This document shows positions 5,586 through 31,335 of a DNA stretch of 64,000 nucleotides, piece by piece. The translations under genes and the position numbers were made by a program. The stretch covers positions 1 to 64,000 of the forward strand of contig NW_021833019.1 in the NCBI RefSeq assembly GCF_006345805.1. The letters run 5' to 3'. The DNA comes from Octopus sinensis. Its lineage: Eukaryota. The stretch's first letter is position 1, and the number at the start of each line of letters is the position of its first letter. The notes beneath the pieces are model-generated. The model saw only the letters and a list, made by a program, of their open reading frames with translations, did not search any database and was not told where the DNA came from.

Positions 5586-5645
5586 CTAATGAAGAGCAAT
5601 ATGCTGAAGCTAGTGGGCCCAGTTATTTAGAATTGAAACCAGCAG
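5586..5645 (+). CDS. Host-gene mini-exon A1 (60 nt, phase 1-1): xNEEQYAEASGPSYLELKPA
   Basis: Acceptor ttttttgaAG, donor GTAAGT, length a multiple of 3, open frame, paralogous to three other copies in the window. Confidence 0.7.
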
Positions 5646-5865
5646 GTAAGTATAAACAATATTGTTAGTACACAGCATGATCTTAAAAATTATCTTAAAC
5701 ATTAACAGAAAGCTAACAATCATGAAATGTATCATTCTCTAACTTTTATCTATTAATATGTGTGTATGAGTGTGTTTGAGTCTGTCTCATTAGCATTTAT
5801 TATTGTAGTATCAACACAATACTAACATAACGCTATTTATTGTTTTTATTTTTTATTTTTTAAAG

Positions 5866-5907
5866 ACATGAAGATTTCTTATGTTAATGTTTCAAGGAAA
5901 CCTGATG
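5866..5907 (+). CDS. Host-gene mini-exon B1 (42 nt, phase 1-1): DMKISYVNVSRKPD
   Basis: Long polypyrimidine tract + taaAG acceptor, donor GTAATT; in frame with A1; YVNV motif. Confidence 0.75.
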
Positions 5908-6009
5908 GTAATTATATAAGCAATCCAATAATAAAATTTCATTCATTAGAGCAAGAGTTAGCAAAATTTTGGTTCACTCTTTCTTTGAGTAGTATAGGCA
6001 GCTTAATGC

Positions 6010-6370
6010 ATGTCTTTTATTTGTTTCAGTCAATGGACTGCAGCCATGCTAAGGCACCACTTTCAAGGGTTTAGTCCAACAAATCCACCTGAGTACTTAT
6101 TATTTTTAAGCCTTTTACTTATTCTATTGGTTTCTTTTGCTAAACTGCTAAGTTTTGTGGATGTGAACAAATCAACACAATTGTCAAGTGGTGATGGGGA
6201 TCAAACGCAAAGGCACACACACTCCCTTATATATATACCAAATCCATTCACAAGATTTTGGTCAGCCCAGGATTATAGCAGAATACACTCGCCCAAGGTG
6301 CCTCATCATGTGACTAAACCCAGACCCATGTGTTTGGAAATTAAACTTCTTACCTCACAGCCACACCTAA
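6010..6370 (-). mobile_element. tRNA-derived SINE
   Basis: Minus strand starts AGGTGTGGCTGTGAGGTAAGAAG (A-box-like), then GGCACCTTGGGCGAGTG..GACCAAAATCTTGTGAATGGATTTGG. It interrupts the intron sequence shared with the other exon-cassette units. The same family recurs at ~29930-30220 and ~42560-42890. Confidence 0.75.
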
Positions 6371-6876
6371 AAACCTTTCAAAATATTAAAATTCCATTGC
6401 ATATACGATAAACTTCTTACAGATATTCCTATTTAACTCTAATATTTTACCTTTTTATCAATCCTTACCCTTAATGATGTAGTTCATAAACATTTACTTT
6501 GAAAGCTTTATTTGTACAAAAAAATCTAAATAATTAAGTAATGATGAATTCAGTAGATATTTGCTAAGGCATGAGATACAATGAATGGGAATAAATTTGC
6601 AATAGTAAATGTGATTAACTGTTCTCCTCTAGTATCCAAAATCACTCCTGTTTATTTATAACTCTAGCAAGATATTTATCTTAGAAAAACCCTTATTGCT
6701 CTAAACATATTTGTGAATAGCTTCCCTTAAAGTTAAATATCACAACCAAATATTGAAGTGATGGAAATAGTGCAAACTGTACTAAATATATATAGCTGCT
6801 ACTTTTTGTGTATCATCAAAATATTTAAATCACACCCTGAAAACAATAAATATGCCTTTTATTCTATTTCTTGAAG

Positions 6877-6936
6877 TTGTGGAAGAACAATATGCTGAAG
6901 TTAGCGAGCCCAAATATTTAGAAATGAAACAACCAC
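6877..6936 (+). pseudogene. Mini-exon A2 (VVEEQYAEVSEPKYLEMKQP) with mutated donor (ATAAGT)
   Basis: Clear paralogue of A1 with intact acceptor and open frame, but the +1 donor base is A rather than G. Confidence 0.55.
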
Positions 6937-7181
6937 ATAAGTACAATTGATATTGTTAGTACACAGCACGATCTTAGAACCTATCTTTAAAATAGACAGA
7001 CAGCTAACTATTATGAAGTATGTCACTCTCTAACTTTTGTGTATTAATATGCATGTATGTATATGTGACTGTGTTTGAGTGTATCTCATTAGTATTTATT
7101 ATGGTAGAATCAGTACACAGCTATCTTAATTTAAATATTATTTATAGCCATGCTATTTGTTCTTTTTCTAATTTCTTAAAG

Positions 7182-7223
7182 ACATGGTTGGTACTTACGT
7201 TAATGTTTCAAAGAAACCTACTG
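7182..7223 (+). CDS. Host-gene mini-exon B2 (42 nt): DMVGTYVNVSKKPT
   Basis: tttcttaaAG acceptor, GTAAGT donor, phase 1-1, YVNV retained. Confidence 0.75.
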
Positions 7224-7681
7224 GTAAGTATATAAGCAATTTATTAACAAAAATTATTAACAAAAAATTTAGTGTTAGTACATTCTGATATTATATCCCA
7301 GTGAAGTAAATTTTGTACAATCAGCCTCTCAATAAGTACTACTTTTACATAATCATTAGCATCTTTCTTGTAGAATAGAATTTTGGGTGCCACTTTACTG
7401 AGGAACCCTCTTTCCAAAGTCTAATTTTGAAATGTCATATTAACCAAAATTACTCCTTTTTTCCTTTTGTTCATACCAAATAAATTTATTAGACAATACT
7501 TTTCTTTTTAACAATATGTAAATGAGAGGATGAAGATCATATACTGTACATGGACTCTGGCTGGATTTAAATATTTTTTGTTTCTAAATACATGTATGTG
7601 TATATATATAATTATATTTGTAGAAAAAAGAATAGAAATGGCTTTTCTGATAATTTTTCTACTTCAATAGTTAGATGTTTA

Positions 7682-7910
7682 TAAGTTTACAAAAGGGTAA
7701 CTCCTGAATTCAGTTAGTCAAACAAGACATGGGTGAGGGCAGTTGTTGAGGCCATTGCTTCTGCTTTCCTTTTTTCTTGAAGGTCCTTCCACAGCAACAG
7801 GCCAGTGAAGAACTTTAGAAAAGGAAAGCAGAAGCAATGGCCTCAGCAACTGCCCTCACCCATGCCTTGGTTGACTATCTGAATTCAAGAGTTACCTTTT
7901 TCTAAACTTA
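7682..7910. repeat. Fold-back inverted repeat (MITE-like), arms ~93 bp, loop ~43 nt
   Basis: 7682-7774 is the reverse complement of 7818-7910 with about 7 mismatches. Confidence 0.9.
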
Positions 7911-8321
7911 TCCGCATCAGATCTTGTTTGTTTCATTCATAAAATCTGCATCTCTTAAAAGGAAGTAAAATATTTGAAAATCGGTTATATTGATGTAGTT
8001 TTACATGCTTATTCCTGTGAAGCCATGTACTTGTGGAGAAAGAATTTGATGAAAACTCGAAAAACTGTGTATTTTTAGCCAATAGTGAGACAGAAATTTT
8101 CTGCGTTGTAACATTCTCAACTTAGTGGTGTCAATTTTAATGTTTTACCCTGTGAAATTTATAGTTTAGCATCTGTGAAATGACCTGTTCATTGTAGGTT
8201 TCGAAATAAACAGAAATACCTGATGAAGTCAACATCTATCATCTTACTGTTTCTTTTCTCTCTTCATTGATTTCTGTATGTTTTGTATATTTTTTAAATT
8301 TTTATTTTTATTTGTTATATT

Positions 8322-9820
8322 AATATAAGTGAATAATTCTGGGTAGAAGTAAGGGTCCACCAAGGTTCAGCCCTCAGTCCCTTTTATTCATCATAGTCCT
8401 CCAGGCAATAACAGAGGAATTCAAGATGGGTTGCCCCTGGGAGTTCCTCTATACTGATGACCTGGCCCTCATAACAGAATCACTACCGGAACTAGAAAAG
8501 AAATTTTGGGTGTGGAAGTTAGGTTTAGAATCAAAAGGCCTTATAGTAAATGTTGCAAAGACCAAAGTTCTAGTAAGTAGGAAGGCAAACTCACCACACA
8601 CCCCTTCAGGTAGGTGGCCCTGCTCGATCTGTAGAAAAGGTGTAGGTAGAAACTCCATAAGATGTACCCACTGTAAGCTATGGACGCATAAGAGGTGCAG
8701 CAACATCAGAGGAAAACTAACTGAGAAGATAACTTTCGTGTGCAGCAGATGCACAGGGGCAATAGACACCACAGATACTCAGAAAGCAGATTCCATCACA
8801 CTCCAGGGAGAGAAACTAGAAGTACTTGATAGTTTCCACTACCTAGATGACCAAGTTAGTAGTGGAGGTGGATGCTCAGAGAGTGTCACCACTAGAATAC
8901 GAATAGCCTGGGCAAAGTTTAGAAAGTTTCTACCCTTACTGGTGACAAATGGTCTCTCGCTCAGAGTGAAAGGTAGATTATACGACACATGTGTGCGAAC
9001 TGTCATGCTTCAAGGTAGTGAGATATGGGCTGTGACAGCAGAGAACATGTGTAGGCTTGAAAGAAATGAAGCTAGTATGATCCGCTGGATGTGTAATGTC
9101 AGTGTGCACAGACGACAGAGTGTAAGTGCTCTGAGAGAAATGCTGGACACAAGAAGCATCAGATGTGGCATGCAAGAGAGATGTTTGCGCTGGTATGGTC
9201 ATGTACTATGGATGGATGAGGAGAGATGAGTGAAGAAGTGCCACACCCAAACAGTTGAAGGAATCTGGGGTAGAGGTAGACCCAGGAAGACATGGGATGA
9301 GGTGGTCAAGCATGACTTTTGATCATTGGGCCTCACAGAGACAATGACGAAAGACCGAGATCTCTGGAGATATGCTGTGACTGTGAAGACCTGACAAATA
9401 ACGTGAGTTCATGGCTGTTTCCTGCACCAGCTTCACATAGCAGCCCCAGCCCATCCAAAGTGCCATCGACTGCAGGACGGCTTGCTGTGCTTACCTTGGA
9501 TTGTAGGGCGACCTGCTGTGCTTAAGGAGACCTATTGAGTCAAGTACATCAACATCAAAATAAAAATCAAATGGAAATTGTAGTTGTGATACCTGTGCAT
9601 GTGGCACATAAAAAGCACCATCCGAACATGACCGATGGGTTCCGTACCGGTGGCACGTTAAAAGCACCCACTACACTCACGGAGTGGTTGGCTTTAGGAA
9701 GGGCATCCAGCTGTAGAAACACTGCCAGATCAGACTGGAGCCTGGTGTAGCCTCCTTGCTTCCCAGACCCTGGTCGAACCATCCAACTCATGCTAGCATC
9801 GTTAAATGATGATGATGATG
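8322..9820 (+). mobile_element. 5'-truncated RTE-clade LINE (RT C-terminal half with PHD-like finger, 3' UTR, (GAT)n tail)
   Basis: VGVHQGSALSPLLF, YTDDL, VNVAKTKV, C4HC3 finger, ARIRIAWAKFRKFLPLL, RWYGHV, GRPRKTWDEVV. 3' end ...CATGCTAGCATCGTTAAATGATGATGATGATG. Confidence 0.93.
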
Positions 9821-10014
9821 TATGTATGCGTTTGTTTCACATTAGTTGTTACAGTTGTACTTTATGAAGCCATTGATTTCTACACACAGGAATCAATATG
9901 GGTTGCTTATTTCAGTATTATATATACCTGTTATGTATTTGTGTACGTCACCAATATATATGTGCATGTGGATGTATGTATTCATATATAAGTTTATATG
10001 TACATTTATGCATT

Positions 10015-10055
<41 letters not shown>

Positions 10056-10129
10056 AAAGGGGGTGTCTGTCTCCAAAACTCTAAGTTTGAGTAATGTTTT
10101 CATGCTTGGATTTGGAAACTACAATAAGA

Positions 10130-10620
10130 ATAATCAATCCAATAGACTTTCTAAATTCAGCAGAGTTTATTTCTATTCACTTATCTTTATAGACCCAAGT
10201 TCCTTCAGCATTTGTCCATATTTGGATTTCCAGATTTGGCTTCATGAATAATATAAATGATGAAAGAGCTGAATCCTAAAATCTAGTTGCAAAAAGGGAA
10301 GGTCCAAGTCTGTTCATGTAAACATTGTAGGATGGAGTTCTTCTTGTGCCATTTCAATAGTGTTCTTCCTGAGTCCTTTCAGTTTCAGACTTATCCTTCA
10401 AATAATGTTGTACATGCATCATCGAAGGATTTGAAGAATCATTTTGTTGTCATCATATCCAATTCTGAATAGGCAATACTGGCATGATCATGTTCATTAT
10501 CATCTTCAGGAAAAGAAGATTCATCACAAATAATTTTTTCCCATTCTTTATGAAAGCTGGATAACAATTGTGAAATCTCTTCAAGGCTTAGCTTTTGATT
10601 CTTTCATATTGCGTGGAAGG
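10130..10620 (-). mobile_element. Possible piggyBac-like transposase N-terminal remnant
   Basis: Acidic N-terminal-like stretch (LSLEEISQLLSSFHKEWEKIICDESSFPEDDNEHD) and a weak 'IWTNAEG..W..I..EIN.AEFRK' match. No TIR or TTAA ends verified. Confidence 0.25.
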
Positions 10621-10809
10621 ATTACAAAGGACAAATGAATAGTTGGCAGGCTGTCAATGTTTTATACTTGTTGAATTATGATGCAATGTTTCATCATTCC
10701 TTCAAAGATGATGCAATACTAATTGTTTGTTTCATAAAAATGATGCACTAAATAGTAGTATTGCATCATCTTCAGATATCTTAGTAAATGCTATTAGAGA
10801 TCTTTGCCA

Positions 10810-10930
10810 ACAGTACGGGATGAGGTTGTGCAAACTGATCTCAAAATGCTGAGCCTTACAGAAGAGATGACAATGGATTGGGAGGGTTGGTGCCCTGCCA
10901 TGCTCAAGAAGACCTGCCCATAGCAAGCAG
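10810..10930 (+). mobile_element. Short RTE LINE ORF 3'-end fragment
   Basis: DEVVQTDLKMLSLTEEMTMDWEGWCPAMLKKTCP*, homologous to the ORF end at ~9295-9395. Confidence 0.6.
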
Positions 10931-11399
10931 AACACCTACCCAAAACCTGGTCACAGTATCTCACCATGCTGTATGCACTGAGGATACAACTTTTTTGTAA
11001 CTCTGTAGACCTATATCATATTCTGTCGAGTTTTTGCTAGAAGACTATGAAAATCAATGTTTTTTTTTTCTATTTGCTCAAAAAAGTTCACTCATGACTA
11101 ACTTTGAAATTTTTATACTTGGTTGCATTTGGGTGGGTTTCCAAAATCTAGAACCCTGATAGAATAATAAACAATAAAGGAAAAAAAGATCCATAACTGT
11201 TAAAAGAATTATATTCTACATTCCAGACCAATAAAAAGAAGGTAAGTCATATAAAGTCAAATTAGTCAATAGTCAAGTTGCGGCAAGTCTACAAGAGAGA
11301 ATGAAACTCAATGGCAGGTTAGCTTTGTTCTTGCATGTGGTGTGTAGTTCTTGCATGACCTTAATTGCTCACTCACAGCATTAATTGCTTCTGCTGATC

Positions 11400-12950
11400 T
11401 TTAGTTTAGAGGGCTCTTGTTTCCAGTGATTTGTCAAGCATATCAAAGAAGTCTTGTAGAGTAGTAAGGTTTGTGATAGCTCTGCATAATCTTCAGCTCT
11501 ATATACTTGGTCGCTGAAACAGTGGTCTGCCCAGTCATATGAGATGAACTAGCAGACCATCTGCAATCTCTCACAGTGACGTAAGTAAAAATATAAGAAG
11601 GGCTAGGATTGTTTGCAAATTTCATCTGGCATTACTGATGCTTGGAGTTTTCTGAAACATGATGAAAGGGATGTCTCTCTCTTTCCATGGAAGAACTTGA
11701 AGGCATGGATTAAGTGAAACAGAAACTTCATATCATCTCTCTAACCAGCTTGATCTACTATAACGATTTCCATTCTGGAAGGAGCCTTGGAGTTCTTCAT
11801 AACTTGTCATGAGTTCTTTGACAAGAAAATATCCGATGTTGAGTGAATTGCTTGCACTAGCTAGCTCCTCATCCATAAAAATATGCAGGATTCTGTCCAA
11901 GACATGGTGTTGGTTGCTCATGAATTGTGGCTCATCATAGCATTTGCTCAAGAAATTCTCTGCAGTCTAACCACTACCCAACTCTTTCATCCAGTATTCA
12001 CACTCGTCGTATCAGCAATAATCATTAAGATTTCACCCTAAAAGTGAAATTCACATCAAGATGCTTTTCAATCCTTCTGCAATGGTCTCGACCTTGTCAC
12101 CACACAGCTTCAGAGCAGCCAGCTTAATTCACTTGTTTTGTCTTGATGATTACCACTTGATATTCATTCCATCAATATGTTTACCATCAAAATGCAGGTC
12201 CCATTTCTGATTGCCTAGTGTATTGATCAAGTGTTTCTTCATTACACCATTGTAAAATGCCTTGCTGACTAGGAGCTGGGATATCAATGTCCTCCTCTGA
12301 CAATTCTTTGCAGATTTTCGCAGCTTTGTAGGTAGAGACATTTGTTTCAGTTACAAATCTCATACCAATTGCAGATTTATTGTTCCTTCTTGTGGAAGAA
12401 TAAGTGCCATCACTATCTATATCGCTTTGATCAACTCTGTCATTTTCACCATAATTGTACTCTTCAATCTCTTCTTCTTCAGAGTCACTGTCAGTACCAG
12501 GGTTGCTGAGTTTGATAAAGAATGGGAGGCTTCAGCATCCAAGCATCTTCTCTTGGAATTTACTTGTCGAATAACCCATTTTGCCCTGGCTTTGGAGTTG
12601 GATAGAGTAAAGCATTTTATCATCAGCATTGAGCCATTCATTGCAGACTTTGTTGATATTGAACAGTTCCTCTATAGGCTAAAATTGTCTTTTTTAGGTG
12701 CATTTGTCATACAAATGAAGCACATTTTTGAGCTTGGAAATGATTGGAAAATTCAGCTTATCTCTCCACAGTAGTGTCACCTCTTTCAATAATTCTGTCA
12801 CTCTCTTCATTCTGCCTTTAATTGATTTCCAAAAAAACTGGTACCAACCAGCACCCTTCTCCTTGAGTGGCATTTGAATTCTGCTGTTCAGTGAGGTTTC
12901 ATCTACAGACACACGACCTCTAGATGAATGGGACTGGAACAGCACCAGAT
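11400..12950 (-). mobile_element. Degraded hAT-related DNA transposase
   Basis: Minus-strand fragments WDLHFDGK, ILMIIADTTSVNTG and SNQHHVLDRIL match the HWDGK / FDTTASNTG / CRHHILEL motif series of hAT-like transposases. Confidence 0.6.
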
Positions 12951-12984
12951 GCAGTGTTTATGTAGGCAAATAAATACAAAAGCA

Positions 12985-13960
12985 CCTGGAAGCATCCCTG
13001 ATCTGGTCACTGATATATGTGGACTATGTTATAACTAAGAACAATGAATGCAGTGATTTCGGGTTCACCAGGACTCACATAACATCCAAGTGTTACTTGG
13101 ATCACAGAATGATTCACAGCAAGGTATTTGTTAATCCATATGGAAAGAGGCCACTAAAATCCAGTTTACATCCAAGAATAAACATTGCTTCTTTAAAAAA
13201 TCTAGAAATGATAAAAAATTTTGAAATACATTTAAATTCAAAGCTTACAGAAATAGAGGAATGCCTAAAAATGTGGTGGCACAAGATACATGACAGCATC
13301 AAATCATCTGCTGAAGTAGTTCTAGGATTTGTGAAGCACAAACACCAACAAGAATGATTCTCAAATTAAACCTCTCCTAGAAACTTTGCACAAGAGACAA
13401 AAGACATGGATCTCAGACAAATAATTGCCAACATCCAGATTCCTATACATCTCTAGAGAAAATCTATGCAGAAAACTGCATGAGATGAAAAGTTTGGTGG
13501 ACGAAACAAGCCCAAGAATTGGAACAGGCTGCTAACTCTCACAACTTGAGAACACTGTATAACATTCTGAAAAATGTGTTTGGTCCAAAAAAAGGTATAC
13601 AGAATATTCTCTCTAACGATGTAACACATCTCATAAGTAGGAAAGATGAAATTCTAAAAAGATTACCTGAACACTTTAAATCTGTATCAAATCAAGAATC
13701 CGCTAGCAATGCTGAAGAACTAGTGGAACATCCTTCCTTGGAAGAGACAAGTACTGTTATTGAAAAACTTTCCAATGGTAAAGATCTTGGACAAGACGAT
13801 ATCCCATAGAGGTGTACAAGCATGGTAGCAGACAAATAAATAAACTGTGCAAATTGATCTGTTTGATCTGGGAAACTGGATCTGTTCCCCAGCAGTTCAA
13901 AGATGCATGTATAATGCACCTGTACAAAAACAAAAGAAGAAGAGTCAATGTGATAATCCC
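12985..13960 (+). mobile_element. Degraded RTE LINE fragment (APE C-terminus, linker, RT start), a different family from 8322-9820
   Basis: WSLIYVDYVI..CYLDHRMI (APE end), EILKRLPEHFKSV, LSNGKDLGQDDIP, LIWETGSVPQQFKDACIMHLYKNK. Confidence 0.8.
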
Positions 13961-15791
13961 CTTTTCCAATAGAAGAATAAAGATAATCAAAAGAAAGGAG
14001 AAATGTGATGTTATTGGCAAGCTATTCTAGTATAATTTATTTTATTGATACCTGTTGGATTAAAGTTAAAGCTGACTTTTGTGAGATTTGAACTCAGAAT
14101 GCAGAGGAACATAACTAAATAGAACAAAGCATTTAGTCTGGCACTCCATTCTGGACATAATTTTTGGAACAACTGTCCTTCAAAGTTCCATACCTCATGG
14201 AAAAAGAAAAGTGAGATGGGCAGGTTTCCTTCATTTTGTTTTTAATCTTTTTATGTTTCATACAATGGAAAATTTCCTCACAATTTCTGTCTTTCACATC
14301 CCACCCCTCAATTCTATGCCCTTTTTTCCTTCCATATCATTTAGGAAATAATTTTGATTCTGGTTCATTCTGCCAGCTTCATTTCCATGGGGTTTATTAT
14401 TTCTACCTCAGCTGGATCCAAACACCTACCATTACATTACTTGCCCACCACGTGTACAGTTTTGCTTCTACACCTCTGACAGGTTTGTGGGAGGGGTACA
14501 CGACCAGGTGATTAATAAGTTCACATCATAATCCTGACATGTTAGTATTGAGTTCAATCTAACTCCATCACACCTTGAGCAAGAATCTTTCAGCCTAGTT
14601 TTGGTTTGATCTTTTTTTTATATTTTGTCTTCTACCTATGTTTGTTTGAAAAAGGGACATTGCCTATGCCCTTCACAGACCATCTGGATGAATGAGGTTA
14701 ATGATAAGGCCATTGATGTGCCTTGTGAACCTTCATAAACCAACATTTGTGGGAAAGATATGAGCAGGGAAGGATTTCTTGAGGGAAACCACCATTTTGG
14801 GGAGGAAAAACTGAGCATAGCCATAAGTATGAGGCCTTTTAGGTAGGGCTGGATGGGGTTGGACATAAGAGGGATGATGAGAAGAGAAGAGGCAAATGGG
14901 ATGGGAACGTTTGAGAGGAGGTGGGGTGAGCTCAGCTAGCTGCAAGGAGCAGAAGCCATATAGTACAGTAGAAATGACAGAGAGAGGGGACAGAAAATGT
15001 CTGGGCATCAGACAATGGAGCACATCTAGGAGTGACTTTATAATTTATTGCATCCACCTCTGTTTTCAAAATCTCCTTCAGAGTGGTACAATTAAATGGC
15101 TTGAATGTGGATGTGGCTATTCAAAGCAACAGTAAAAACAGAAAAACACAGAAAAATTTCATGAAATATATGTAAAATATATATGAAAAATATATAAAAG
15201 AATAAGTAAAATATTTAAAAAATTGGCGAAAAACATTTACAATAAAATTCTAATTGATAGATATAAATCTTCCAGAAAATTAAAAAAAAACAGTGATATA
15301 TACAAACAAAACATGTCGATGAAGTGAATCTCATTGTGTAAGAATCAGCACAATGTGTGTTTAACATGATAACTGGCTGTTAATGCCTCACTGTCTGTTG
15401 ATTGGCTAAAATTGATCAGATTTTCCCAACTTTAATTCCAAATAACATCAGGTTCTTTAATTTATGAGATAAAGTAATTAGTTGAGCATAATCAAAATTC
15501 AGAACAGTATCGATACACCAAAATTGAAAACAAGCTGAGCAAAGTTAAAGGGAGCTGATTTTGTGAATGAAACTAACTAGATCCTAGACATTTAATTGTT
15601 AAAGTGGAAAAATTATCAAAAACGCCATTTCTATTCAGATTTTCAAATATATAATACTGTACCAATGGCTTTCTGTTTCTTATTCTACTATATATATATA
15701 TATAACTGCTACATTCTGTGTATCATCAAAATATTTAAAATATCCTCTCCAAACAATAAATATGCCTATTTTTAAAATTAATTTCTTGATG

Positions 15792-15851
15792 CTGTGGAAG
15801 AACAATGTGCTGAGGTTAGCGAGCCAAAATATTTAGAAATGGGACAACGAA
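15792..15851 (+). pseudogene. Mini-exon A3 (xVEEQCAEVSEPKYLEMGQR), canonical acceptor lost
   Basis: The acceptor position reads gaTG instead of gaAG, first Tyr is now Cys, donor GTAAGT intact. An in-frame AG 9 nt downstream could give a 51-nt exon. Confidence 0.5.
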
Positions 15852-16106
15852 GTAAGTACAATCAATATTGTTAGTACACAGCATGATCTTAGAACCTATC
15901 TTTAAAATAGACAGACAGCTAACTATTACGAAATATGTCACTCTAACTTTTGTCTATTAATATGCATGTACATGCAATTTATGTTTGTGTGAGTGTGTTT
16001 GAGTCTATCACATTAGTATTTATCATGGTAGAATCAGTACACAGCTATCTTCATTTAAATATTATTTATAGCCATGCTATTTGTTCTTTTTTTTCATTTC
16101 TTAAAG

Positions 16107-16148
16107 GCACGGATGGTACTTACATTAACGCTTCAAATAAACCTGTTG
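16107..16148 (+). CDS. Host-gene mini-exon B3 (42 nt): GTDGTYINASNKPV
   Basis: tttcttaaAG acceptor, GTAAGT donor, phase 1-1, YxN retained. Confidence 0.7.
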
Positions 16149-16394
16149 GTAAGTATATAAGCAATTTATTAACAAAAAAATTACTTTCATTAGAGCAAGA
16201 TTAGCAAATAGTTTGGCTCATTCTTTCTTTGAGTAGAATACGCAGCTTAATATATATGTATGATTGAAATTAAAACTTTGAAGATGCTAAAATTTCATTG
16301 CATATATAATAAACTTCTGCTGATGATAAATATACATATTACATATATGTTTAAAAATCTCATCACGCAATCAAACCAATGAAAGAATCTTTAT

Positions 16395-17218
16395 CTGGTC
16401 GCTCAACATGCTAAAAATAGCAGCCAAAGTATCCCCCTTCCTAAATCACACGTGCAAATATTCTTTATTATATTCAAAACACTGATGCAAATTTAGAAAG
16501 GATTATTGGTGGAAGATTTAATGATAGAAGCCAACAATGTGCTCATGAATTTTGGAAAGAAATTTATCTTTATTTTCAAATGTAATTTCAACAAAAGTTT
16601 ACATTCATCAAATATGACACTGCTAGATGCATTAGATTGCATCAACATACTTGCAACATATTTATAAATATAATTTGCAACTGCAATACAGTTGTTTGTG
16701 GTAGACAATCACAACTACCTATTGATTTAAAAGAAGAATTGTTTCTGTAACCAATTAATGGTCCTCGACAATTTAAATTTTTGATTACTAAAATCACAAC
16801 ATATTCACTTACAAAAAATTGTGAAACATGTTCACTCAATACTGAACATGAAATTACTTCCAGAAATTGAATCCTCCTGAATTTAAATATCTTGTTATTC
16901 AAATTAATAGATTTTTATTAATCAAAATTTTAATATGGAAGAAAGAATTAAATGTGATATAATGAACTTCTGATCAAAAAGGCAGCAAATATTTGGCACA
17001 AATTTTCCTCTAAAAGCTGCTGTTATTCATAGAGGACCAACATCTAGAGCAGGCCACACTGATTAAAACTAGAGATGATATTTGGGATGAAATCAATGAC
17101 AACATCATTACAAAAAGACATACTAAATTTCCTCCCAAATTGCCTGACATTGTTTTATCATTTATGGAAAAAAAATGTAAACAAATTAAAAAACAAAATT
17201 CAGTGGAATTGTAACTAA
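16395..17218 (+). pseudogene. Intronless ubiquitin-specific protease (peptidase C19/UCH) pseudogene, copy 1
   Basis: Cys-box-like GRSTC(frameshift)NSS at ~16397-16422, QQCAHEF at 16532, CETC..P.FKYLVIQINRF, His box AAVIHRGPTSRAGH at ~17015-17057, then IKTRDDIWDEINDNII and VLSFMEK. Stops and frameshifts present. Confidence 0.8.
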
Positions 17219-18224: not shown

Positions 18225-18322
18225 ATATGTATATATATATTTATATATATATATACACTGCTAACATATTTTAGATATTATTTATAGCCATGTTACATAT
18301 TTATTTTTTTAATTTCTTAAAG

Positions 18323-18364
18323 ACTTGGATGATGCTTATGTTAATGTTTTGAAGAAACCTAGTG
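18323..18364 (+). CDS. Host-gene mini-exon B4 (42 nt): DLDDAYVNVLKKPS
   Basis: tttcttaaAG acceptor, GTAAGT donor, phase 1-1, YVNV. Flanking intron is homologous to that of B1. Confidence 0.75.
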
Positions 18365-19410: not shown

Positions 19411-20899
19411 TATTTAAACATTAATATGTTTAAATTATCAATAAAATATATTTGAATGACTGATATAGTAGAATACCATATTAAAACTTGAAATTTAGTC
19501 CCACTCTATTCTGAGCTCAAATACCACTGATGTCCGTTTTATCTTTCATCTTTTTCTGATCTACACAATAAATTTCAGTGATCTACTAGGTTGATTTTGC
19601 ATGCTAATTTTTATTCACTGAGAAAACTGATTATTTTTAATATTGATTATATAATTTCACTTTTTGTTTTTGTTGGGCTTTGTAATGTATTGCATATATT
19701 ATATACTCTGTATTTTATACCCAGCTGTTGTATTCTACACCTCTACAAACTAAAAGTTGCAACCCTATTGACATTTACGAAAACAACAAAGAAATGAGAT
19801 AAATCTGTAAGTTGTTAAATGAAGATATTGTCTTAAAACATATTTATTTTGAAATAAGTTTTTCTAATGACCATTCATGCTTTGTTTTCTTGAAAGCAGA
19901 TAGTGTCAGAATAGTTGAGGTATGATTAAGTTCTTCTTTCATTTTGTAAGTATTGTTATTCATGAATTTAATACTGCATTTAAAGTCAAGCTATTTTATT
20001 GGTTTTACTTCTTTCGTAATATTTCCTTAATGAAGATGTCATGTATTGAAAACCATCTCTCAAATATGTTCTGGAAGTATAACAGTACGTTCAAAAATAT
20101 CCTAAACTTATATTAACAGTTTCTTATATTCTCTTGAATTCTAACCTGATTATATCCATATGGAGAACATGGGTATATAAAATAATGCAAGTAATAGTAA
20201 ACTAAAATCTAAGCCTATGAAAGAAGAAACTATTTATACTTATATTTCTCTGAATTATATATAATAAATAAATTTGTCTCTTTTTATCTTTTTCTTAGTT
20301 ATGATTATATATATACAGGATTTGTGCACTATCATTTCATCCATATTCATTGGTGAAGCTTGGATTTTCTATATATTTCTAAAAATACTTATGGAATTAG
20401 AGGAATTAGATTTAATTTATTCTCATCATTTTATGTACCTAAATTTATCTTTAAGAAATAAGAATTTTTCATTCACTATATAGTTCTGATATTACATATA
20501 GATATTTAAGTTTTTATTAATTTGCTTAAATTCTTATTAAGTTTTTTGATATTATTTACTTAAATTCTCAGACACTCAGTTACTAAATTGGCTTGCTACC
20601 TGTCTTTGTTTAAACTCTGCATGAGTTTCTGAACTTACAAAATGGAAACATACAACCATGAATTCTTTCACCGCTAAGCATTCATATGTGTTTCAACTTG
20701 AAGTTCTTCAGAAATGGAAACCTGTAAAGCATCTTGCAATTAGAACCAATAACTTAATCTTGTTAAAGATCACCAAAACACAACACTGCACATCTCAAAA
20801 AAATATCTATTACACCTTTTTCTCTCATGAATATTAAAACTTTATGTAAATTCTAACACTCTTCATATATTTTTCACTGATACTCCAACTATCCAAACT

Positions 20900-21700
20900 T
20901 CAGTGCCAAACAACTGACAATAAACAACCATTACAAAGAAAATTTGCTCTCATCCCCACATCAGAATCGTACTCTAAACTCCCCTGACAGTTGCTGCAAA
21001 ATCTACCAAACCAGAAAATCATCTTGGAGAGAGCTGATAGTTATTGGTACAGAAAACACATGTTCTATAGGAAAACCCATGAAAAACTGTTCAAAGGAAC
21101 AATTAACACTGAAATTAATGTACTAGATTGACAGACAGTTGCACATACAACACTAGTTGCAAAACACGAGGAGCATATGACCAAAAACTACAAGCTCATA
21201 GCATACTTGGAGGTTATATATGAATTATATAGTTTTCTTGAATGCATTCCTTCACGTTCACTGTGGAATAAGCAATATGGTGGCTGAAGAGTGGGCAAGA
21301 GGAAAGAAAGGAGTCTTAGGCTGGGATGAACAGCTTCTTATAAACCTTCCTTAAGATAACAAAACAGCATTGCTAAAACTTATTGACTGTATGGCTAGAC
21401 TCTAAGAAGTTGTTTGATTCTGCTTATTACTTATGGATAAGAGAGTCACCTCATTTTGTTGAGGTTCTAAATGATATATTCATTGTTATTAAGGAACTGA
21501 CAACATCATGGTCCACAAGAACTATCAATAAGAACTGGAGCTACCACTAGAGTCACTAACAAAGTTATATTATCTACAGGAATATTTCAGGGTGACAGCT
21601 CATCTGTAATGCTTTTCATCCTAACAGCGAACCATTTGTCAGCCTTTAAAGGATTACATGATAGGATCTGCACCCACATCTTTTTTGTTTATAACCTTAC
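20900..21700 (+). mobile_element. Degraded R2/R4-group (RLE-type) non-LTR retrotransposon RT remnant
   Basis: G..GWDEQLLIN, WLDSKKLFDS (cf. WIDYKKAFDS), GIFQGDSSSVMLFILTANHLS. Duplicate at ~35300-36090. Confidence 0.7.
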
Positions 21701-21863
21701 TACTACTACTACTACTTCCAATCATTTTAGTATTTAAGTAAGCATACTCTAATATTCAATTATTTTTCTGCAAAGCATGTAATTACTTTCAAAATTACCA
21801 AGCATCAAATAACTGTTTAAGAGATCAGGATCTCATGTGCATTTTTATTCTTTCATTTTGTAG

Positions 21864-21874
21864 GTTACCAATGA
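21864..21874 (+). CDS. Candidate last coding exon of the Tyr-motif gene (phase 1: G-Y-Q-stop)
   Basis: Strong acceptor tttttattctttcattttgtAG|GTTACCAATGA. The duplicate at 36255 has a synonymous CAA>CAG. No donor follows, and AATAAA occurs at ~22846 and ~22897. Tentative. Confidence 0.3.
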
Positions 21875-23330: not shown

Positions 23331-23388
<58 letters not shown>

Positions 23389-24324: not shown

Positions 24325-24349
24325 TGTATATATATATATTATATATATA

Positions 24350-24398
<49 letters not shown>

Positions 24399-24578: not shown

Positions 24579-27500
24579 TCACCACCTCAATACTACTGCA
24601 GTAACAAAAACTTAAAGAAACATAGGAAGCAGAATGCGCCCCCCACGGCTCAAACAAGAAATCCCCAAATATGCCGCTATTCACTGCGCCAGAGACTCTG
24701 CACAAATAGTGACTGCATCTTCACGCATCTACCCGGCACTAGACGCACTACCAGCCAAGGCCAAAGCACGCATCCCACAATAACATCAACACCACCAAAT
24801 AGTAAATCGAAATTCAAAACACACACAACTCGGAGTCCCAAAATCTGCCGGTATTCCCAACGTGAGAGAACATGTCTACTGAGTGACTGTCCCTTCACTC
24901 ATCTTCCAGGGACCCGATGCACAAACAGAAACGGGGCCTCAAGCCAACACACAAACCTGAATAACAATAAAAATAGAAACACACCATGCTGCAGTAATGC
25001 TGGTCCAGTCTTTTCAGGAAGACACAAAACAACAACAACAAAAGTGGAAACTACAACCCTATCCAACAGTGCAACCACACCTCCAGCCAAAAACTGCTCC
25101 CTAAGCAGGAAAATTCTTTTTTAGCCATGTTGAACATGGCAAAAGAGATACACAAAAACATTCTAGCCATCACTCAACACCATCCTATGCTATTACCCCA
25201 GTGCACCAATTCCCCACATTGCTGCCACTAACACACACAAAAAATCCAAGCCCCCTGCAACAGTCAAAACCAGCCACTACACTAACCTCCACATTCCTAC
25301 TCAATGCACAAGGTGTCAGCCCTTCCATCAATGCACAAAAATGGAAGGTCCAATTCATTGAAGACTGGGTTGGTAACCATTCACACCACATCCCTTTCTT
25401 CATTCTCACTGAGACCCACCTTGACAACTCCCACTTGGAAGCCGAAGTGAGAGTGAAGAAGAATTTCACAACCATCCGCGCGGATCGTATCGGCAGGAGG
25501 AAGGGTGGAACTGCCATTTTCCTGCATGATTCATTTACGGCAGATGGAAATAGTATATTCTCCAACGGCTACTGTGAATCAGTCACCGTGCACAACAAAG
25601 CCAATGACCTGACAGTAATTGGGCTCTATAGGCCGCCCAAAAACCCCATACTGTGCTTTAAAGAATGCCTCACCAGCATTAAGTGCTTTATTCAACAGTG
25701 CCATTCTAGCAACATACTCATGATGGGAGACTTCAATCTACCCTGTGTTGACTGGACTACAAACTGTTTGAAACCAAGCACTCCCGCCTCAACCGCTGAC
25801 AAAGAAGCAGCAGAGTCACTTTTCGACTTTACGAATGAGTTTTTTCTTGTCCCAACTTGTCCTTGCACCAACAAGACATCAGAACATATTGGACCTAGTG
25901 TTTAGTAACCACACTAACACTATACATAACGTTACAGTGGAAAAAAACCTTCTTTCAGACCATGACATGGTTCTCTGTAACATGAAATTCCACCAGCCGA
26001 AAGCTAATCCTAGTGACCTTCCTCCAGCCCACCCATTTGACAACATGGATCTCCATAAAGCCAACTGGGATGCAATCAGGAACGAGCTATCAAATGTTGA
26101 CTGGTCCTTTACACATACACACATCTCACCAACCATAAAACATCTTGGCAGATCTTTGTAGACACCGTCACAGACATATGTGCAAAACACTCCCCACCAA
26201 GACCTGTGAACAAAAAGTGCAGAATCCCCCAAAACAGAAAAACCATTATCAGAAAAATAAAAGAACAAACAAAAAAATTAACAAACTAAAGTACTGCCAA
26301 CAGCAAAAACACACATTCGACGGCTATCGCACTGCTTGAATCCAAAAAATATAACCTCCAACATGCATGAAGACCCTCATCAATAACCAAAGATCAGCTG
26401 AGGAGAAGTGGGCCATTGAAAAAATCAAACTCAACCCCAAAGTGTTCTTTTCATTTGCGAGGAAACGCAGGGTCCCTGTCTCCACTGTAGGCCCTCTAAT
26501 TGACGAAACTGGCACTCTCCAAGATAATGCCAAATCCATGGCCGAGATACTGCAGAAACAATACTGCTCTGTTTTCAGCAATCCTGATATGGCCGATCTG
26601 GGCTGTATCAGTGATGTCAACCCCCAACACACTATATCGGACATAACGTTTAGTGCCCCTGATGTCTTAGCGGCGATAAACGAAATAAAACACAATTCAG
26701 CAGTAGGCCCCGATAGGTTCCCTGCTTGTGTCCTGAGGTGTGTGTGTCGACACCAACTTGCATCTCCCCTTGCTAATCTGTGGAGAAACTCACTGGATGC
26801 TGGCTATATTCCAAAAAAACCTTCTGTCCCAGTCTGTTGTCCCAGTTTTCAAAAAGGGAAACAAGTCCCTTGCAGTGAATTACCGTCCGATCTCACTCAC
26901 CTCTCATATCATCAAGGTATTTGAGAGGGTGGTGAGATCTCGAATAAACCAATTTCTGGAAAGCAACAGACGGCTGATCTCCAACCAACATGGGTTCCGT
27001 AATGGAAGGGACTGCCTAACGCAGCTCCTGCATCACTTTGAGGACATTTTGAGAGCTTTGGGAGAGGGCTCCAACACCGATGTCATCTACCTTGATTTCA
27101 GTAAGGCCTTCGACAGGGTCGATCACAAGATCCTATTGAAAAAACTATCCAACATTGGTGTCTCTGGAAAGTTACTGAAATGGATTAAGTGTTTCCTGAC
27201 AGACAGATCTCAACATGTTGTAGTTGAAGGGGTTAAAATCAAGCCCAGCCAAAGTCAGTAGTGGCGTTCCGCAAGGCACTGTTGCTGGGCCCACTTCTTT
27301 TCATCATTTACATTAATGACATTAATGACATCATCAAGCACAGCAACATAAAAATCTTTGCAGATGACTCCAAGCTACAGAAGGTCATAAATGAGGCGAG
27401 TGACCGGACATGCCTTCAGTCAGATCTACTGGCTGTTATCCAATGCGGCAGAAAAAACAATATGCTGCTGAACGAGGATAAATTTGAGCTAATCCACTTT

Positions 27501-28332
27501 GGAAAAGAGGATGCCCTGAAACTCCCATACTCCCTTCCTTCAGGTGAAACTCTCACGGCATCCAACAACATCAGAGACTTGGGAGTAATTGTGGACAACA
27601 ACGTAAGCTGGGCCACTCATATATAAACACCAAAGTTGACATGGCCCGCAGAATGTGTTCCTGGATTCTCAGAACTTTCCAGTCGAGAGATATCCACACC
27701 ATTATCCTTCTCTTCTCCACTTTTGCCCGACCCCACCTTGAATATGTTGTCCACTGTGGTCTCCCCACACAATACAAGGTATCATAAAAGTTGAAGCACC
27801 TCAAAGGGCAATCACAAAAAAGATAGATGGCATGACAGGCCTCGACTATTGGGGTCGACTAGAAAAGCTAAAACTCTATTCTCTCCAACGTCGTCGTGAG
27901 CGCTACATCATCTGCATGATGTGGAAAATGTTCCATCAGCATTGCCCAAATGATGTTGGCATCACCTTAAGGTACATCCAAGGCTTGGGCCCCGTGCCAT
28001 CGCCCCAAAACAAAAATCGCACTCTCATCTCATAACAACAATACGGCACAATTATTTCACCTCAATTGGCCCCGCTCTCTTAACATTACACCAAAACACA
28101 TTAAAACAGAAACTGACCCTATAGGGTTCAAGAAGTCTTGGACAGATTCCTTCAAGAAATCCCGGATAAACCCCCTACACCCGGATATGTCTCTGTAAAC
28201 AATAACTCTCTACTTGAGTGGGCCATAGTGCCCAATTCTGACTTCAAAGACTTCACCAGGTGGTGCTATTAAGTTAGACATGGCCTGGGCCAATAATGGC
28301 CGAAATATCAAAGTATCAAAGTATCAAAGTAT
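24578..28332 (+). mobile_element. Near-full-length CR1/Jockey-group LINE (ORF1 C-terminus, APE endonuclease, RT), multiply frameshifted
   Basis: Two CCCH fingers (ORF1 end). APE: FLLNAQG, ILTETHL, GLYRPP, LMMGDFNLP, LDLVFS, LSDHDMV. RT: VVPVFKKGNKSLAVNYRPISLTS, QHGFRNGR, IYLDFSKAFDRVDH, LGPLLFIIYIND, IFADDSK, RDLGVIVD, LKLYSLQRRRERY. Tail of (ATCAAAGT)x3 at 28307-28332. Confidence 0.95.
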
Positions 28333-28338
28333 ATATAC

Positions 28339-28381
<43 letters not shown>

Positions 28382-28624
28382 ATATATATATATATATATA
28401 TATCATATATATACATATATATATATACATATATATTATATATATATATATACATATAATACATATATATATTATATATACATACTATATAACATATAAT
28501 ATATATACATATATATACTATATACATACATATATATATAATATATTATATATTAATATATATATATATATATATACATATATATACATATATATATATA
28601 TACATATAATACATATATATAATA

Positions 28625-28657
<33 letters not shown>

Positions 28658-28792
28658 TATATATATACATATATAACATATATATATATATATACTATAT
28701 ATACATATATATATATAATACATATATTATATATATACTATATATATACCAATACATATACATATATATATAATATATATATATATATATAG

Positions 28793-28834
<42 letters not shown>

Positions 28835-28884
28835 ATATACATTACATATATATATATACATATACATATATAATATCTATATAC

Positions 28885-28917
<33 letters not shown>

Positions 28918-29229
28918 ATATATATATATACATTATAATATATACATAATCTATATATATATAGATATAAATATATATATATATATATTATATATAATAA
29001 TATAACATCTATATACATATATAATAATATATATAATATATATATATACATATATATAATATATAATATATATATCTATATATATATACATATATATACA
29101 TAATATATATACATATATATACTATATATAAATAAATATATATATATATATATTATATCATATATATACATATATATATATATATACCATATAATTACAT
29201 AACATATATATATATATATTATACTATAA

Positions 29230-29260
<31 letters not shown>

Positions 29261-29297
29261 AATATATATATACATTATATATATAATATATATATAC

Positions 29298-29330
<33 letters not shown>

Positions 29331-29632
29331 ATACTATATATATTATATATTATATACATATATATACATATATATATATACATATATATACATATATATA
29401 AATAATTATATATATATATATATATATACATATATATACATATATATATATATATACATATATATATACATATACATATATATATATACATATATATTAT
29501 ATATATACATATATATATATATATCAATATATATTATTATATATATTATATATTATATACATATATATACATATATATCTATATAATATATATTATACTA
29601 TACATATACATATATATATATACATATACATA

Positions 29633-29668
<36 letters not shown>

Positions 29669-29676
29669 GATATACA

Positions 29677-29740
<64 letters not shown>

Positions 29741-29817
29741 CATATATTATAATATATATATCATATATATATATACATATATATATATATAATATACATA
29801 TATTATATTATATATAT
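28333..29817. repeat. ~1.5 kb imperfect (TA)n/(TACA)n low-complexity tract
   Basis: Direct reading. Confidence 0.97.
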
Positions 29818-29890
29818 CAGCTTCACAGACCCCAGTTGACCCGTCCAACCCATGCTAGCATGGAAAGCGGACGCTAAACGATGATGATGA

Positions 29891-29893
<3 letters not shown>
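29818..29893 (+). mobile_element. Extremely 5'-truncated RTE 3' end
   Basis: ...CCGTCCAACCCATGCTAGCATGGAAAGCGGACGCTAAACGATGATGATGATGAT. Confidence 0.85.
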
Positions 29894-29929
<36 letters not shown>

Positions 29930-30583
29930 TTTTACTTGCCACAGTCATTGAACTGGAGCCATGATAAGGCACCATTTTGAGGGGTCAAGTCAGATACTTG
30001 TTCTAGCAATCTTTTTTACCAAACTGAGAATGTAGGCAAACCAACTCTGGTGATCAAGCAGTGTGAGGATGGACAAACATAAACATGAACACACACGCAC
30101 ACACACATGCAACAGGATTCCAGCCAGTTTTCATCAATCAAATTTATTCACTAATCATCGGTTGGTCCTGGATTACAATGGAAGACACATATGCAAAGTG
30201 CTGCACAGTTCATAGATGTGTATACATCTTTATACAGAGTTGATGTAAAAACATCAGATAATATATCTTTGGTATTTAAAGGCTTAATTATAATAAAAAA
30301 AAACATCATTAAACTTCACAAGTTTATTGTAATAAAATAAAAATGTAAGGAATATACTTGTTTGCTTATACAAAATTGGCTAAAATGATGGTTGAGTGAC
30401 ATATTTTCAACATATCATATCATATGTATGTATGTATGTATGTGCGTGCGTGCGTATTACCTTACTTGGAAACAAGAGGTTGGTACTAAAAAAAGTATCC
30501 ACCCATAGAAAACCTCAATGAATTCCATCTAGTCCATAAAGCGAAGAAACTTGGAAAAAGTGCCATGAAAATGATAATCATAT

Positions 30584-30584
30584 A

Positions 30585-30655
<71 letters not shown>
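30584..30655. repeat. (CGCA)n microsatellite at the duplication junction
   Basis: Pure tetranucleotide run abutting the first base of duplication unit 2. Confidence 0.95.
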
Positions 30656-30656
<1 letters not shown>

Positions 30657-30985
30657 TGAGATAAAGTAATTGGTTGAGCATAATCAAAATACAGAACAGT
30701 ATCAATACACCAAAATTGAAAACAAGCTGAGCAAAATTAAAGGGAGCTGATTTTATGTATGAAACTAACTAGATCCTAGACATCTAATCATTAAAGTGGA
30801 AAAATTATCAAAATCGCCATTTCTATTCAGATTTTCAAATATATAATACTGCACTAATGGCTTTCTATTTCTTATTCTACTATATATACATTTATATAAC
30901 TGCTACATTCTGTGTATCATCAAAATATTTATATCATCATCTCCAAACAATAAATATGCCTATTTTTTAAATTAATTTCTTGATG

Positions 30986-31045
30986 CTGTGGAAGAACAAT
31001 GTGCTGAGGTTAGCGAGCCGAAATATTTAGAAATGGGACAACGAA
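30986..31045 (+). pseudogene. Mini-exon A3' (duplicate of A3; same lost acceptor and Tyr>Cys)
   Basis: Differs from A3 by one synonymous base (CCA/CCG). Confidence 0.5.
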
Positions 31046-31293
31046 GTAAGTACAATCAATATTGTTAGTACACAGCATAATCTTAGAACCTATCTTTAAA
31101 ATAGACAGACAGCTAACTATTATGAAAAATGTCACTCTCTAACTTTTGTGTATTAATATGCATGTATGTATGTGTGAGTGTTTTTGAGTCTATCTCATTA
31201 GTATTTATTATGGTAGAATCAGTACACAACTATCTTATTTAATTAAATATTATTTATAGCCATGCTATTTGTTCTTTTTTTAATTTCTTATAG

Positions 31294-31335
31294 GCATGGA
31301 TGGTACTTACGTTAACGTTTCAAAGAAACCTACTA
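31294..31335 (+). CDS. Host-gene mini-exon B3' (42 nt): GMDGTYVNVSKKPT
   Basis: tttcttatAG acceptor, GTAAGT donor, phase 1-1, YVNV. Confidence 0.7.

Follow-up and report, generated by a model that had tools for sequence, protein, structure and literature searches.

A tyrosine-rich mini-exon array in Octopus, probably the cytoplasmic tail of a multi-immunoglobulin receptor gene

The stretch analysed here, called the window below, comprises 64,000 nucleotides of Octopus sinensis DNA (RefSeq assembly GCF_006345805.1, contig NW_021833019.1, positions 1 to 64,000 of the forward strand). Its sequence is AT-rich, eukaryotic and filled with retrotransposons. Between positions 5586 and 31335 it carries two kinds of mini-exon, A (60 nt) and B (42 nt), which recur as A-intron-B units and encode tyrosine motifs; they are the subject of this report. 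An original prediction, made from the letters of the window, had described four A units and five B units as the tail of a receptor or adaptor, and the coordinates, lengths and translations that it gave all match ours. The units, the terminal exons and the two copies of a tandem duplication are listed here in the order of their positions (x in a motif stands for any residue).

5586 to 5645, plus strand: A1 exon, 60 nt, phase 1-1, NEEQYAEASGPSYLELKPA, with YAEA and YLEL; canonical AG/GT
5866 to 5907, plus strand: B1 exon, 42 nt, (D)MKISYVNVSRKPD, with YVNV, a YxN motif; AG/GT
6877 to 6936, plus strand: A2 unit, 60 nt, VEEQYAEVSEPKYLEMKQP, with YLEM, a YxxM motif; acceptor AG, donor AT
7182 to 7223, plus strand: B2 exon, 42 nt, MVGTYVNVSKKPT; AG/GT; included in the O. 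vulgaris model P0007
15464 to 24336, no strand assigned: tandem duplication, copy 1, carrying A3, B3, B4 and a terminal exon
15792 to 15851, plus strand: A3 unit, 60 nt, VEEQCAEVSEPKYLEMGQR; acceptor TG, donor GT; first Tyr changed to Cys
16107 to 16148, plus strand: B3 exon, 42 nt, TDGTYINASNKPV, with YINA; AG/GT
18323 to 18364, plus strand: B4 exon, 42 nt, LDDAYVNVLKKPS; AG/GT; last cassette ahead of the terminal exon
21864 to 21874, plus strand: start of the terminal exon, ag/GT TAC CAA TGA, read as (G)YQ-stop in phase 1
30656 to 39107, no strand assigned: tandem duplication, copy 2, about 8.7 kb and about 95% identical, carrying A4, B5 and a second terminal exon, without the B4 segment
30986 to 31045, plus strand: A4 unit, a duplicate of A3 (59/60 identical); acceptor TG; first Tyr changed to Cys
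31294 to 31335, plus strand: B5 exon, 42 nt, MDGTYVNVSKKPT; AG/GT; same type as O. vulgaris L002_21217
36255 to 36265, plus strand: start of the duplicate terminal exon, ag/GT TAC CAG TGA, read as (S/G)YQ-stop

Low-stringency tblastn and the DNA pattern TAYRTTAAYGYT found these copies alone in the 64-kb window. The pattern gave 5 matches against 0.34 expected, an excess that is trivial because the copies are duplicates of one another. The nine units had been taken as one continuous tail, and this part of the prediction did not hold. Because the segment 15464-24336 is repeated at 30656-39107, A4 and B5 lie beyond the stop exon at 21864, and they are followed by a terminal exon of their own at 36255. 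The duplicated segment is single-copy in all four of the O. vulgaris and O. sinensis loci aligned to the window (L002, L006, L003 and L004), and the duplication is a polymorphism of the genome from which the window came, or else an artefact of its assembly. Both terminal exons have kept the canonical site and the frame. Similar endings occur in related protein models, GYQ-stop in P0003, P0004, P0008 and P0039 and GDYQ-stop or SYQ-stop in P0010, P0011 and P0033.

The window was aligned to five related Octopus loci. Two near-identical stretches of the O. vulgaris chromosome OX597818.1 (L002 and L006) showed 96-99% identity to it; these copies are 99.3% identical to each other and lie about 170-190 kb apart. 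Identity was about 95% for the O. sinensis loci L003 (chromosome CM016863.1) and L004 (unplaced scaffold VCDQ01000858.1), the latter being collinear with the window such that its position 58102 corresponds to window base 1. The O. bimaculoides locus L001 was 82-93% identical. A paralogous O. vulgaris locus, L005, is located on the same chromosome OX597818.1 at a distance of about 750 kb.

The frame of the units was examined in 19 A exons and 21 B exons, 40 in all, which came from the window and from five related loci. Offset 2, which corresponds to phase 1-1, was the sole stop-free frame in 40 of the 40, and the other two frames contained stops in most or all of the copies. No junction-codon stop arose in any ordered combination of exons, which bears out the proposal that any subset of them would splice in frame. 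In the five B units of the window the invariant residues are Tyr (TAT or TAC), Asn (AAT or AAC) and Lys-Pro (AAA CCT), as had been noticed before, and all five are bounded by AG/GT and preceded by a pyrimidine tract. In the window the donor of B1 reads GTAATT, where the relatives have GTAAGT. That all nine units are exons was only partly borne out: A1 and B1-B5 have canonical splice sites, but A2, A3 and A4 do not. A canonical tail is formed by no more than six of the nine, followed by the terminal exon. Since its donor is AT, A2 is probably a dead or non-canonical exon; the same AT donor is present in O. vulgaris L002, and A2 is skipped by the O. vulgaris model P0007. One speculation is that adenosine-to-inosine editing might restore this donor to a GT-like site. 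In A3 the sequence EEQY has become EEQC, and the next AG lies 9 nt inside the unit, where the frame would hold. A units with a TG acceptor are nonetheless present in the O. sinensis models P0004 and P0039. Their presence reflects either the use of a non-canonical site or forced models. Standard calling of open reading frames (ORFs) does miss the array, as had been stated, for a bacterial-style listing gave nothing but ORFs of transposons and frames of low complexity. RefSeq, however, already models the exons of the array as uncharacterized proteins, so that it is not hidden.

A search with the concatenated A/B peptide, a check proposed together with the original prediction, returned nine proteins, all of them from Octopus. 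The matches were RefSeq "uncharacterized" proteins of O. sinensis, O. bimaculoides and O. vulgaris. A1 plus B1 were found at 100% identity in isoforms X1-X3 of O. sinensis LOC115229375 and in O. vulgaris P0007, and the A1 peptide was 100% identical in O. sinensis P0001, P0002 and P0039 and in P0007. The O. bimaculoides protein LOC106880794 (P0003) has the same architecture and the GYQ end, with the orthologue of B4 as its final cassette. The same tail stands at the C-terminus of the larger Octopus proteins P0010 (1220 aa), P0011 (709 aa) and P0013 (464 aa), whose tails were matched with phmmer E-values of 2e-56 to 5e-16. Pfam assigned the immunoglobulin (Ig) families Ig_3, I-set and C2-set_2 to these three proteins. 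Proteins of this type show a hydrophobic transmembrane (TM) segment and then an R/K-rich juxtamembrane stretch, for example ...GTIIGCFVGIVLLITLVLLIYNSHKIRAVKCKKD-ISSAKG..., after which up to about twenty A/B repeats follow in the large proteins, ending in GDYQ. The A/B tail lies C-terminal to a multi-Ig ectodomain and a TM helix in P0010, P0011, P0013, P0032, P0038 and P0060. In O. sinensis LOC115212249 (P0039), Ig domains are joined to exactly NEEQYAEASGPSYLELKPA-D-MKISYVNVSRKPD...GYQ.

The exons of the window match the tail pattern of this family, that is, 20-aa A repeats (VEEQYAE.SEPKYLEM-like), 14-aa B repeats (MDG.YVN.SKKP-like) and an end of the form G/S-(D)-Y-Q-stop. Besides others, the unnamed family includes the RefSeq entries LOC115212116, LOC115212249, LOC106869178 and LOC106874069. 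Its members were found in Octopus species only, in protein searches that included a HMMER scan of 1.84 billion representative proteins with P0003 as query. That scan also gave bacterial matches (P0014, P0015 and others, with SGSYTDLxNKP-like repeats), which were rejected as compositional or repeat artefacts from DUF1566 and fibre-like proteins. A PDB sequence search with the full-length paralog P0060 gave no match among solved structures, and literature searches on the LOC identifiers and on octopus Ig receptors with tyrosine tails or an ITIM (immunoreceptor tyrosine-based inhibitory motif) returned nothing relevant. The gene is already annotated as an "uncharacterized protein", and the family was not met in the literature searched.

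The exon structure of a complete receptor could be read from L005. Ig exons (538-13868), an intact TM exon (14805-14915) and tail exons (49795-73027) lie there on one strand, and every tail exon is 42 or 60 nt long with AG/GT sites. The tail exons belong to types C, D, A and B and are collinear with the Ig and TM exons. In the window, no upstream tail exon, TM exon or Ig exon was found, positions 1-5585 included. The collinear L004 has upstream tail exons, which precede the point matching window base 1 by 12-48 kb.

L004, about 9.7 kb: juxtamembrane mini-exon GVKRNKE
L004, 25232 and 30100: two 42-nt "C" cassettes, GTEDNYATISDEAL-like
L004, 45680: "D" exon

Since these exons come before the base-1 match and none lies in the window, the 5' part of the gene is placed upstream of it, where the original prediction had put it. 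One C-type cassette candidate inside the window, at 52101-52136 (ENEYAKISNEQL), was rejected as a weak match lacking splice sites. It falls in a transposase-like segment with many stops (51960-52260, plus strand), which is the source of this spurious match.

Exons account for 22% of the aligned length but for only 1 of 29 distinct indel events (P = 0.007), and this lone event is a 1-nt homopolymer deletion in the B exon L004_76319 of the O. sinensis scaffold. In-frame stops were absent from all 40 exons; with the intron-derived substitution spectrum they would be expected from 5-10% of random substitutions. This depletion has P of about 0.01 with the minimal, conservative count of events and P = 0.0008 with Fitch counts. 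Among 36 distinct B-type repeats, extracted with a pattern that left positions Y-3, Y+2 and Y+3 unconstrained, Asp was found at Y-3 in 32, Asn at Y+2 in 32 and V, I or L at Y+3 in 33. The motif P-[KR]-Y-[LV]-x-M is kept in most A repeats of the family, and 20 of 35 extracted A-type strings, a few of them mis-registered, have Met at Y+3. These motif cores persist in paralogs that reach 45-76% identity to P0010 in their best local BLASTP alignment. The indel, stop, splice-site and motif-position signals, and only these, point to coding constraint. A length and a frame that do not vary, motif cores that are conserved and flanks that are free or evolve fast make up the pattern expected of short linear motifs in a disordered tail, although the copy in the window may itself be drifting.

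It was further predicted that docking sites had been gained by exon duplication, and the comparison of assemblies agrees with this. The A-intron-B unit is a duplicated segment of about 500 bp in which the intron between copies is at least as similar as the exons, and units have been gained, lost or replaced between assemblies. A 505-bp segment containing B4 (18180-18684) is present in O. vulgaris, in copy 1 of the window duplication and in O. bimaculoides; copy 2 and O. sinensis L003 lack it, the gap having the same boundaries in both. In O. sinensis L004 a larger span, corresponding to window 17750-20763 and including B4, is absent. Where the window and O. vulgaris have unit 2, O. sinensis has instead a unit closer to unit 3. 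B3 and B5 differ at 7 of 42 nt, five of these differences being amino-acid changes and one falling in the junction codon, whereas the duplicate surrounding them differs by about 5%. Both types recur at the corresponding position when different assemblies of O. sinensis and O. vulgaris are compared, which suggests old alleles, exchange between paralogs or diversifying selection. From the loss, replacement and exchange of units and the copies of the locus, we conclude that the array is undergoing remodelling by gain, loss and exchange.

Splicing appears to add to this variation. We compared the RefSeq isoforms of three family genes, namely seven of LOC106869178 and eight of LOC106874069 in O. 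bimaculoides and three of LOC115229375 in O. sinensis. They differ only by whole 14-aa or 20-aa tail blocks and by one alternative C-terminus, and isoform X3 of LOC115229375 skips B1. The annotated isoforms thus agree with the suggested tuning of the tail by alternative splicing, and the differences are those predicted if any subset splices in frame, RefSeq isoforms being an indirect basis for this.

Taken together, we consider that window 5586-21874 is probably the 3' cytoplasmic-tail part of an Octopus-restricted multi-Ig receptor gene, whose tail would serve for SH2 docking and be varied by cassettes. The gene would belong to a clustered family of type-I receptors that have several Ig domains and a single TM helix, followed by a long tail which is probably disordered. 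This tail is encoded by an array of symmetric phase-1 mini-exons closed by the short GYQ-stop exon, and it is unusually modular, with one candidate docking motif to each exon. Its 60-nt A cassettes supply E-E-Q-Y-A-E together with P-K-Y-L-E-M/L (YxxM/L), and its 42-nt B cassettes D-x-x-Y-V-N-V-S-K-K-P (YxN). The array has grown by tandem duplication of the A-intron-B unit of about 500 bp, with 30656-39107 as a recent larger copy.

Phosphotyrosine followed by x-N is a ligand of Grb2-family SH2 domains, and phosphotyrosine followed by x-x-M is a ligand of p85. In the window the candidate sites of the former type are those of the B exons, with Asn at Y+2 in 5 of 5, and candidates of the latter type are YLEM in A2-A4, A1 having YLEL instead. 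Acidic residues precede most tail tyrosines. Judged from these motifs, tyrosine phosphorylation and SH2 binding of the cassettes are predicted. When the Ig receptor engages a ligand, tyrosines of the tail might be phosphorylated, for example by Src-type kinases, after which a B cassette could bind a Grb2/Drk-type SH2 domain and an A cassette one of the PI3K-p85 type. Strength and quality of signalling would then depend, through valency, on how many cassettes of each kind the genome and splicing provide. A relation of YxN to Grb2, of YxxM to p85 and of site number to signal strength is described in two published papers (PMC3342071, PMC2193818). The sequence ISYVNV of B1 also matches the ITIM consensus (I/V/L/S)-x-Y-x-x-(L/V/I), as had been pointed out; B1 is the only B unit to do so, and B2-B5 have Gly or Asp at Y-2.

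Several results weigh against this reading. In a rival explanation, the copy in the window is a decaying duplicate or pseudogene tail in a cluster with fast turnover, in which motifs and frame have been inherited and not yet eroded. In an alignment of seventeen A-intron-B units from six loci, mean pairwise identity was 0.827 for A, 0.825 for B and 0.872 for the intron. The original prediction had expected exon conservation above that of the flanking duplicated intron, but exons stood at about 0.83 and the intron at 0.87. On a tree built from the non-exon columns, A accumulated 0.73 steps per site, introns 0.70 and B 0.98, the rate of B being above that of intron-site samples (P of about 0.02). 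Substitutions were spread evenly over codon positions (14/18/15 in A and 16/15/16 in B), without a third-position excess. There is no global purifying signal, because the exons are no better conserved than the intron and the codon positions are evenly hit; such a neutral-like rate is what a pseudogene would show. Three of the four A units, A2, A3 and A4, have broken splice sites, and retrotransposon pieces lie within the array (8426-9229, 13574-14005 and 25201-27626). YVKV stands in one B repeat of the family and YVSV in four. In the related O. sinensis model P0039 the TM exon is frameshifted, being read in the +1 frame, and a signal peptide is lacking; the short RefSeq models have non-homologous and probably spurious N-termini, and the B exon L004_76319 carries the 1-nt deletion mentioned above. 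It may be that the locus is decaying. On the other side, canonical sites and the frame persist in A1, in B1-B5 and in the two terminal exons, the exons have fewer indels and stops than expected, and they are retained and open in O. bimaculoides at about 10% divergence. Several RefSeq isoforms have been modelled for the O. sinensis counterpart, and the O. sinensis frameshifts, being in homopolymers or at unknown positions, could be assembly errors. We therefore regard the decay of the window copy as unlikely.

The short RefSeq models, of 155-187 aa, raise another explanation, in which the gene encodes a small TM adaptor of the LAT/NTAL type without an ectodomain. Such transmembrane adaptors (TRAPs) are marked by a very short ectodomain, a TM helix, a palmitoylated CxxC next to the membrane and the absence of Ig domains. 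P0002 and P0003 are indeed short, with a hydrophobic start and otherwise only the Tyr-rich tail, and YVNVS is found in human LAT. However, in the short models of O. sinensis the hydrophobic stretch at the N-terminus is a translated polypyrimidine tract (…CACTTTTTACTTTTTTTTAG/GT…) with an AG before the GVKRNKE juxtamembrane mini-exon, which follows a true TM exon in the paralogs. The N-terminus of the O. bimaculoides short model is unrelated to the O. sinensis one, and the O. sinensis sequence lies in O. bimaculoides on the opposite strand with a frameshift. No Pfam family was found for P0002, P0003 and P0005 at E<=1, the Pfam matches of P0004 were sub-threshold and to unrelated families, none of them LAT, and both the paralogs and P0039 carry large Ig ectodomains. 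Since the N-termini of the short models are intron-derived or unrelated, we rejected the small adaptor, which is highly improbable. Of the receptor-or-adaptor tail first proposed, the receptor is therefore the part that stood, through the multi-Ig and TM paralogs, P0039 and L005. It could also be asked whether the units are tandem repeats that do not code, or pseudo-exons of transposon origin, strung together by chance in gene prediction, as the introns are as similar as the exons and the ab initio models P0007-P0009 and P0012 fuse exons with transposon pieces or an adhesion-GPCR-like gene (GPCR, G protein-coupled receptor). Such an origin is barely conceivable, because the copies are limited to a few loci of one Ig-receptor cluster and have only 9-11 protein matches, all in Octopus, one frame is open in 40 of 40 copies, the lengths do not depart from 60 and 42 nt, and the units, which lie collinear with Ig and TM exons, keep their motifs across paralogs.

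If the multi-Ig receptor gene is accepted, chicken BG (MHC, butyrophilin-like) is the closest match to it in gene architecture. In BG genes, one exon for the Ig domain and one for the TM segment precede 13-36 exons, each 21 nt long, whose boundary codons are split, and the cluster expands and contracts fast (PMC4046983). The octopus gene resembles them in its Ig-superfamily ectodomain exons, TM exon and tiny symmetric tail exons, in boundary codons shared between neighbouring exons, in the varying number of these exons, in the clustering of the genes and in the possibility of alternative exon use. Unlike the octopus units, the BG exons, which go with an IgV ectodomain, are 21 (or 24) nt long and encode coiled-coil heptads, and there is no sequence similarity; the octopus units alternate between 60 and 42 nt, are duplicated together with their intron and encode Tyr motifs. 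PECAM-1/CD31, the Siglecs (CD22) and CEACAM1-L are likewise multi-Ig type-I receptors, and ISYVNV of B1 fits the ITIM pattern known from them. The signalling tyrosines of PECAM-1, a functional analogue, lie in a tail made of several small, alternatively spliced exons (exons 9-16). These receptors have one or two ITIMs or immunoreceptor tyrosine-based switch motifs (ITSM), whereas the octopus tail has near-identical cassettes in tandem. With LAT, NTAL/LAB, Gab, CD28 (YMNM) and DAP10 (YINM) the octopus tail shares, as far as its sequence tells, the pYxN and pYxxM motif types, and its YVNV core is that of LAT and Shc. Those proteins are ectodomain-less adaptors or single-motif receptors without duplicated cassette exons. 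No sequence homology to BG, PECAM-1, LAT, NTAL, Gab, CD28 or DAP10 was found by Pfam on the short models and a PDB sequence search.

More tentatively, the loci could together form a lineage-specific Octopus cluster of about 1 Mb of fast-evolving multi-Ig receptors that combines one-SH2-site cassettes, gains, loses and exchanges them between paralogs and haplotypes and serves immunity or cell-cell recognition. We hold this to be possible and somewhat doubtful as a whole. That the B residues around Tyr evolve faster than introns suggests diversifying selection. To our knowledge, cephalopods have no adaptive immunity of the antibody type, and little is known of their receptors for recognition at the cell surface. 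If the proposal is true, the cluster would be a cephalopod counterpart of the vertebrate immune-receptor clusters, such as the leukocyte receptor complex (LRC), FcRL and chicken BG. It would show a lineage independently building and tuning phosphotyrosine platforms by exon duplication and cassette splicing. It would also offer a tractable case of short linear motif evolution at the level of exons, with a conserved core and flanks at or above the neutral rate.

Several public models at these loci are fragmented or chimeric and could be corrected, examples being tail-only models with intron-derived N-termini, fusions with transposons and fusions with a neighbouring adhesion-GPCR-like gene. The first coding exon of LOC115229375 X1-X3 (L004 9620-9742) consists of intron sequence plus the juxtamembrane mini-exon. 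The same sequence is inverted in O. bimaculoides (L001 8876-9000, minus strand), where it lies frameshifted upstream of LOC106880794; the placement reflects either an inversion or a misassembly, and the locus has many N gaps. A transposon-derived ORF fragment at window 13574-14005 (plus strand; …ESASNAEELVEHPSLEETSTVIEKLSNGKDLGQDDIP…) is fused to tail exons in P0007, P0008, P0009 and P0012, and these models are therefore chimeric. P0012 (O. vulgaris CAJ1099246.1, from a 12-Mb contig) is a model named adhesion GPCR G6-like, in which leucine-rich repeats, GPS and a partial seven-TM region are joined to the C, A1 and B1 tail exons and to sequence from transposons. Neighbouring genes have probably been fused in this model, and it shows that an additional copy of the tail array exists on another contig.

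The window contains a Ty3/gypsy-type long terminal repeat (LTR) retrotransposon on the minus strand at 44632-50468, with LTRs at 44632-45170 and 49934-50468 that are 96.9% identical. Its ORFs include reverse transcriptase (RT) and RNase H at 47263-48168 and integrase at 46095-46649, and a gag/protease-like ORF at 48699-49415 had no Pfam match. The element is probably not intact, because the pol region is split over several ORFs. O. vulgaris L006 shares its 5'-most 1.7 kb or so, as far as window 46342, where L006 stops. Between the two copies of the duplication, a non-LTR piece at 25201-27626 (plus strand) encodes an Exo_endo_phos endonuclease and RT over several frames. Another non-LTR piece at 8426-9229 (plus strand) is a C-terminal part containing a PHD finger, and a related fragment lies at 55947-56414 (minus strand). 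Window 28001-30000, just upstream of the second duplicate copy, has a GC content of 0.15 and a strong negative GC skew, and probably consists of simple or low-complexity repeats.

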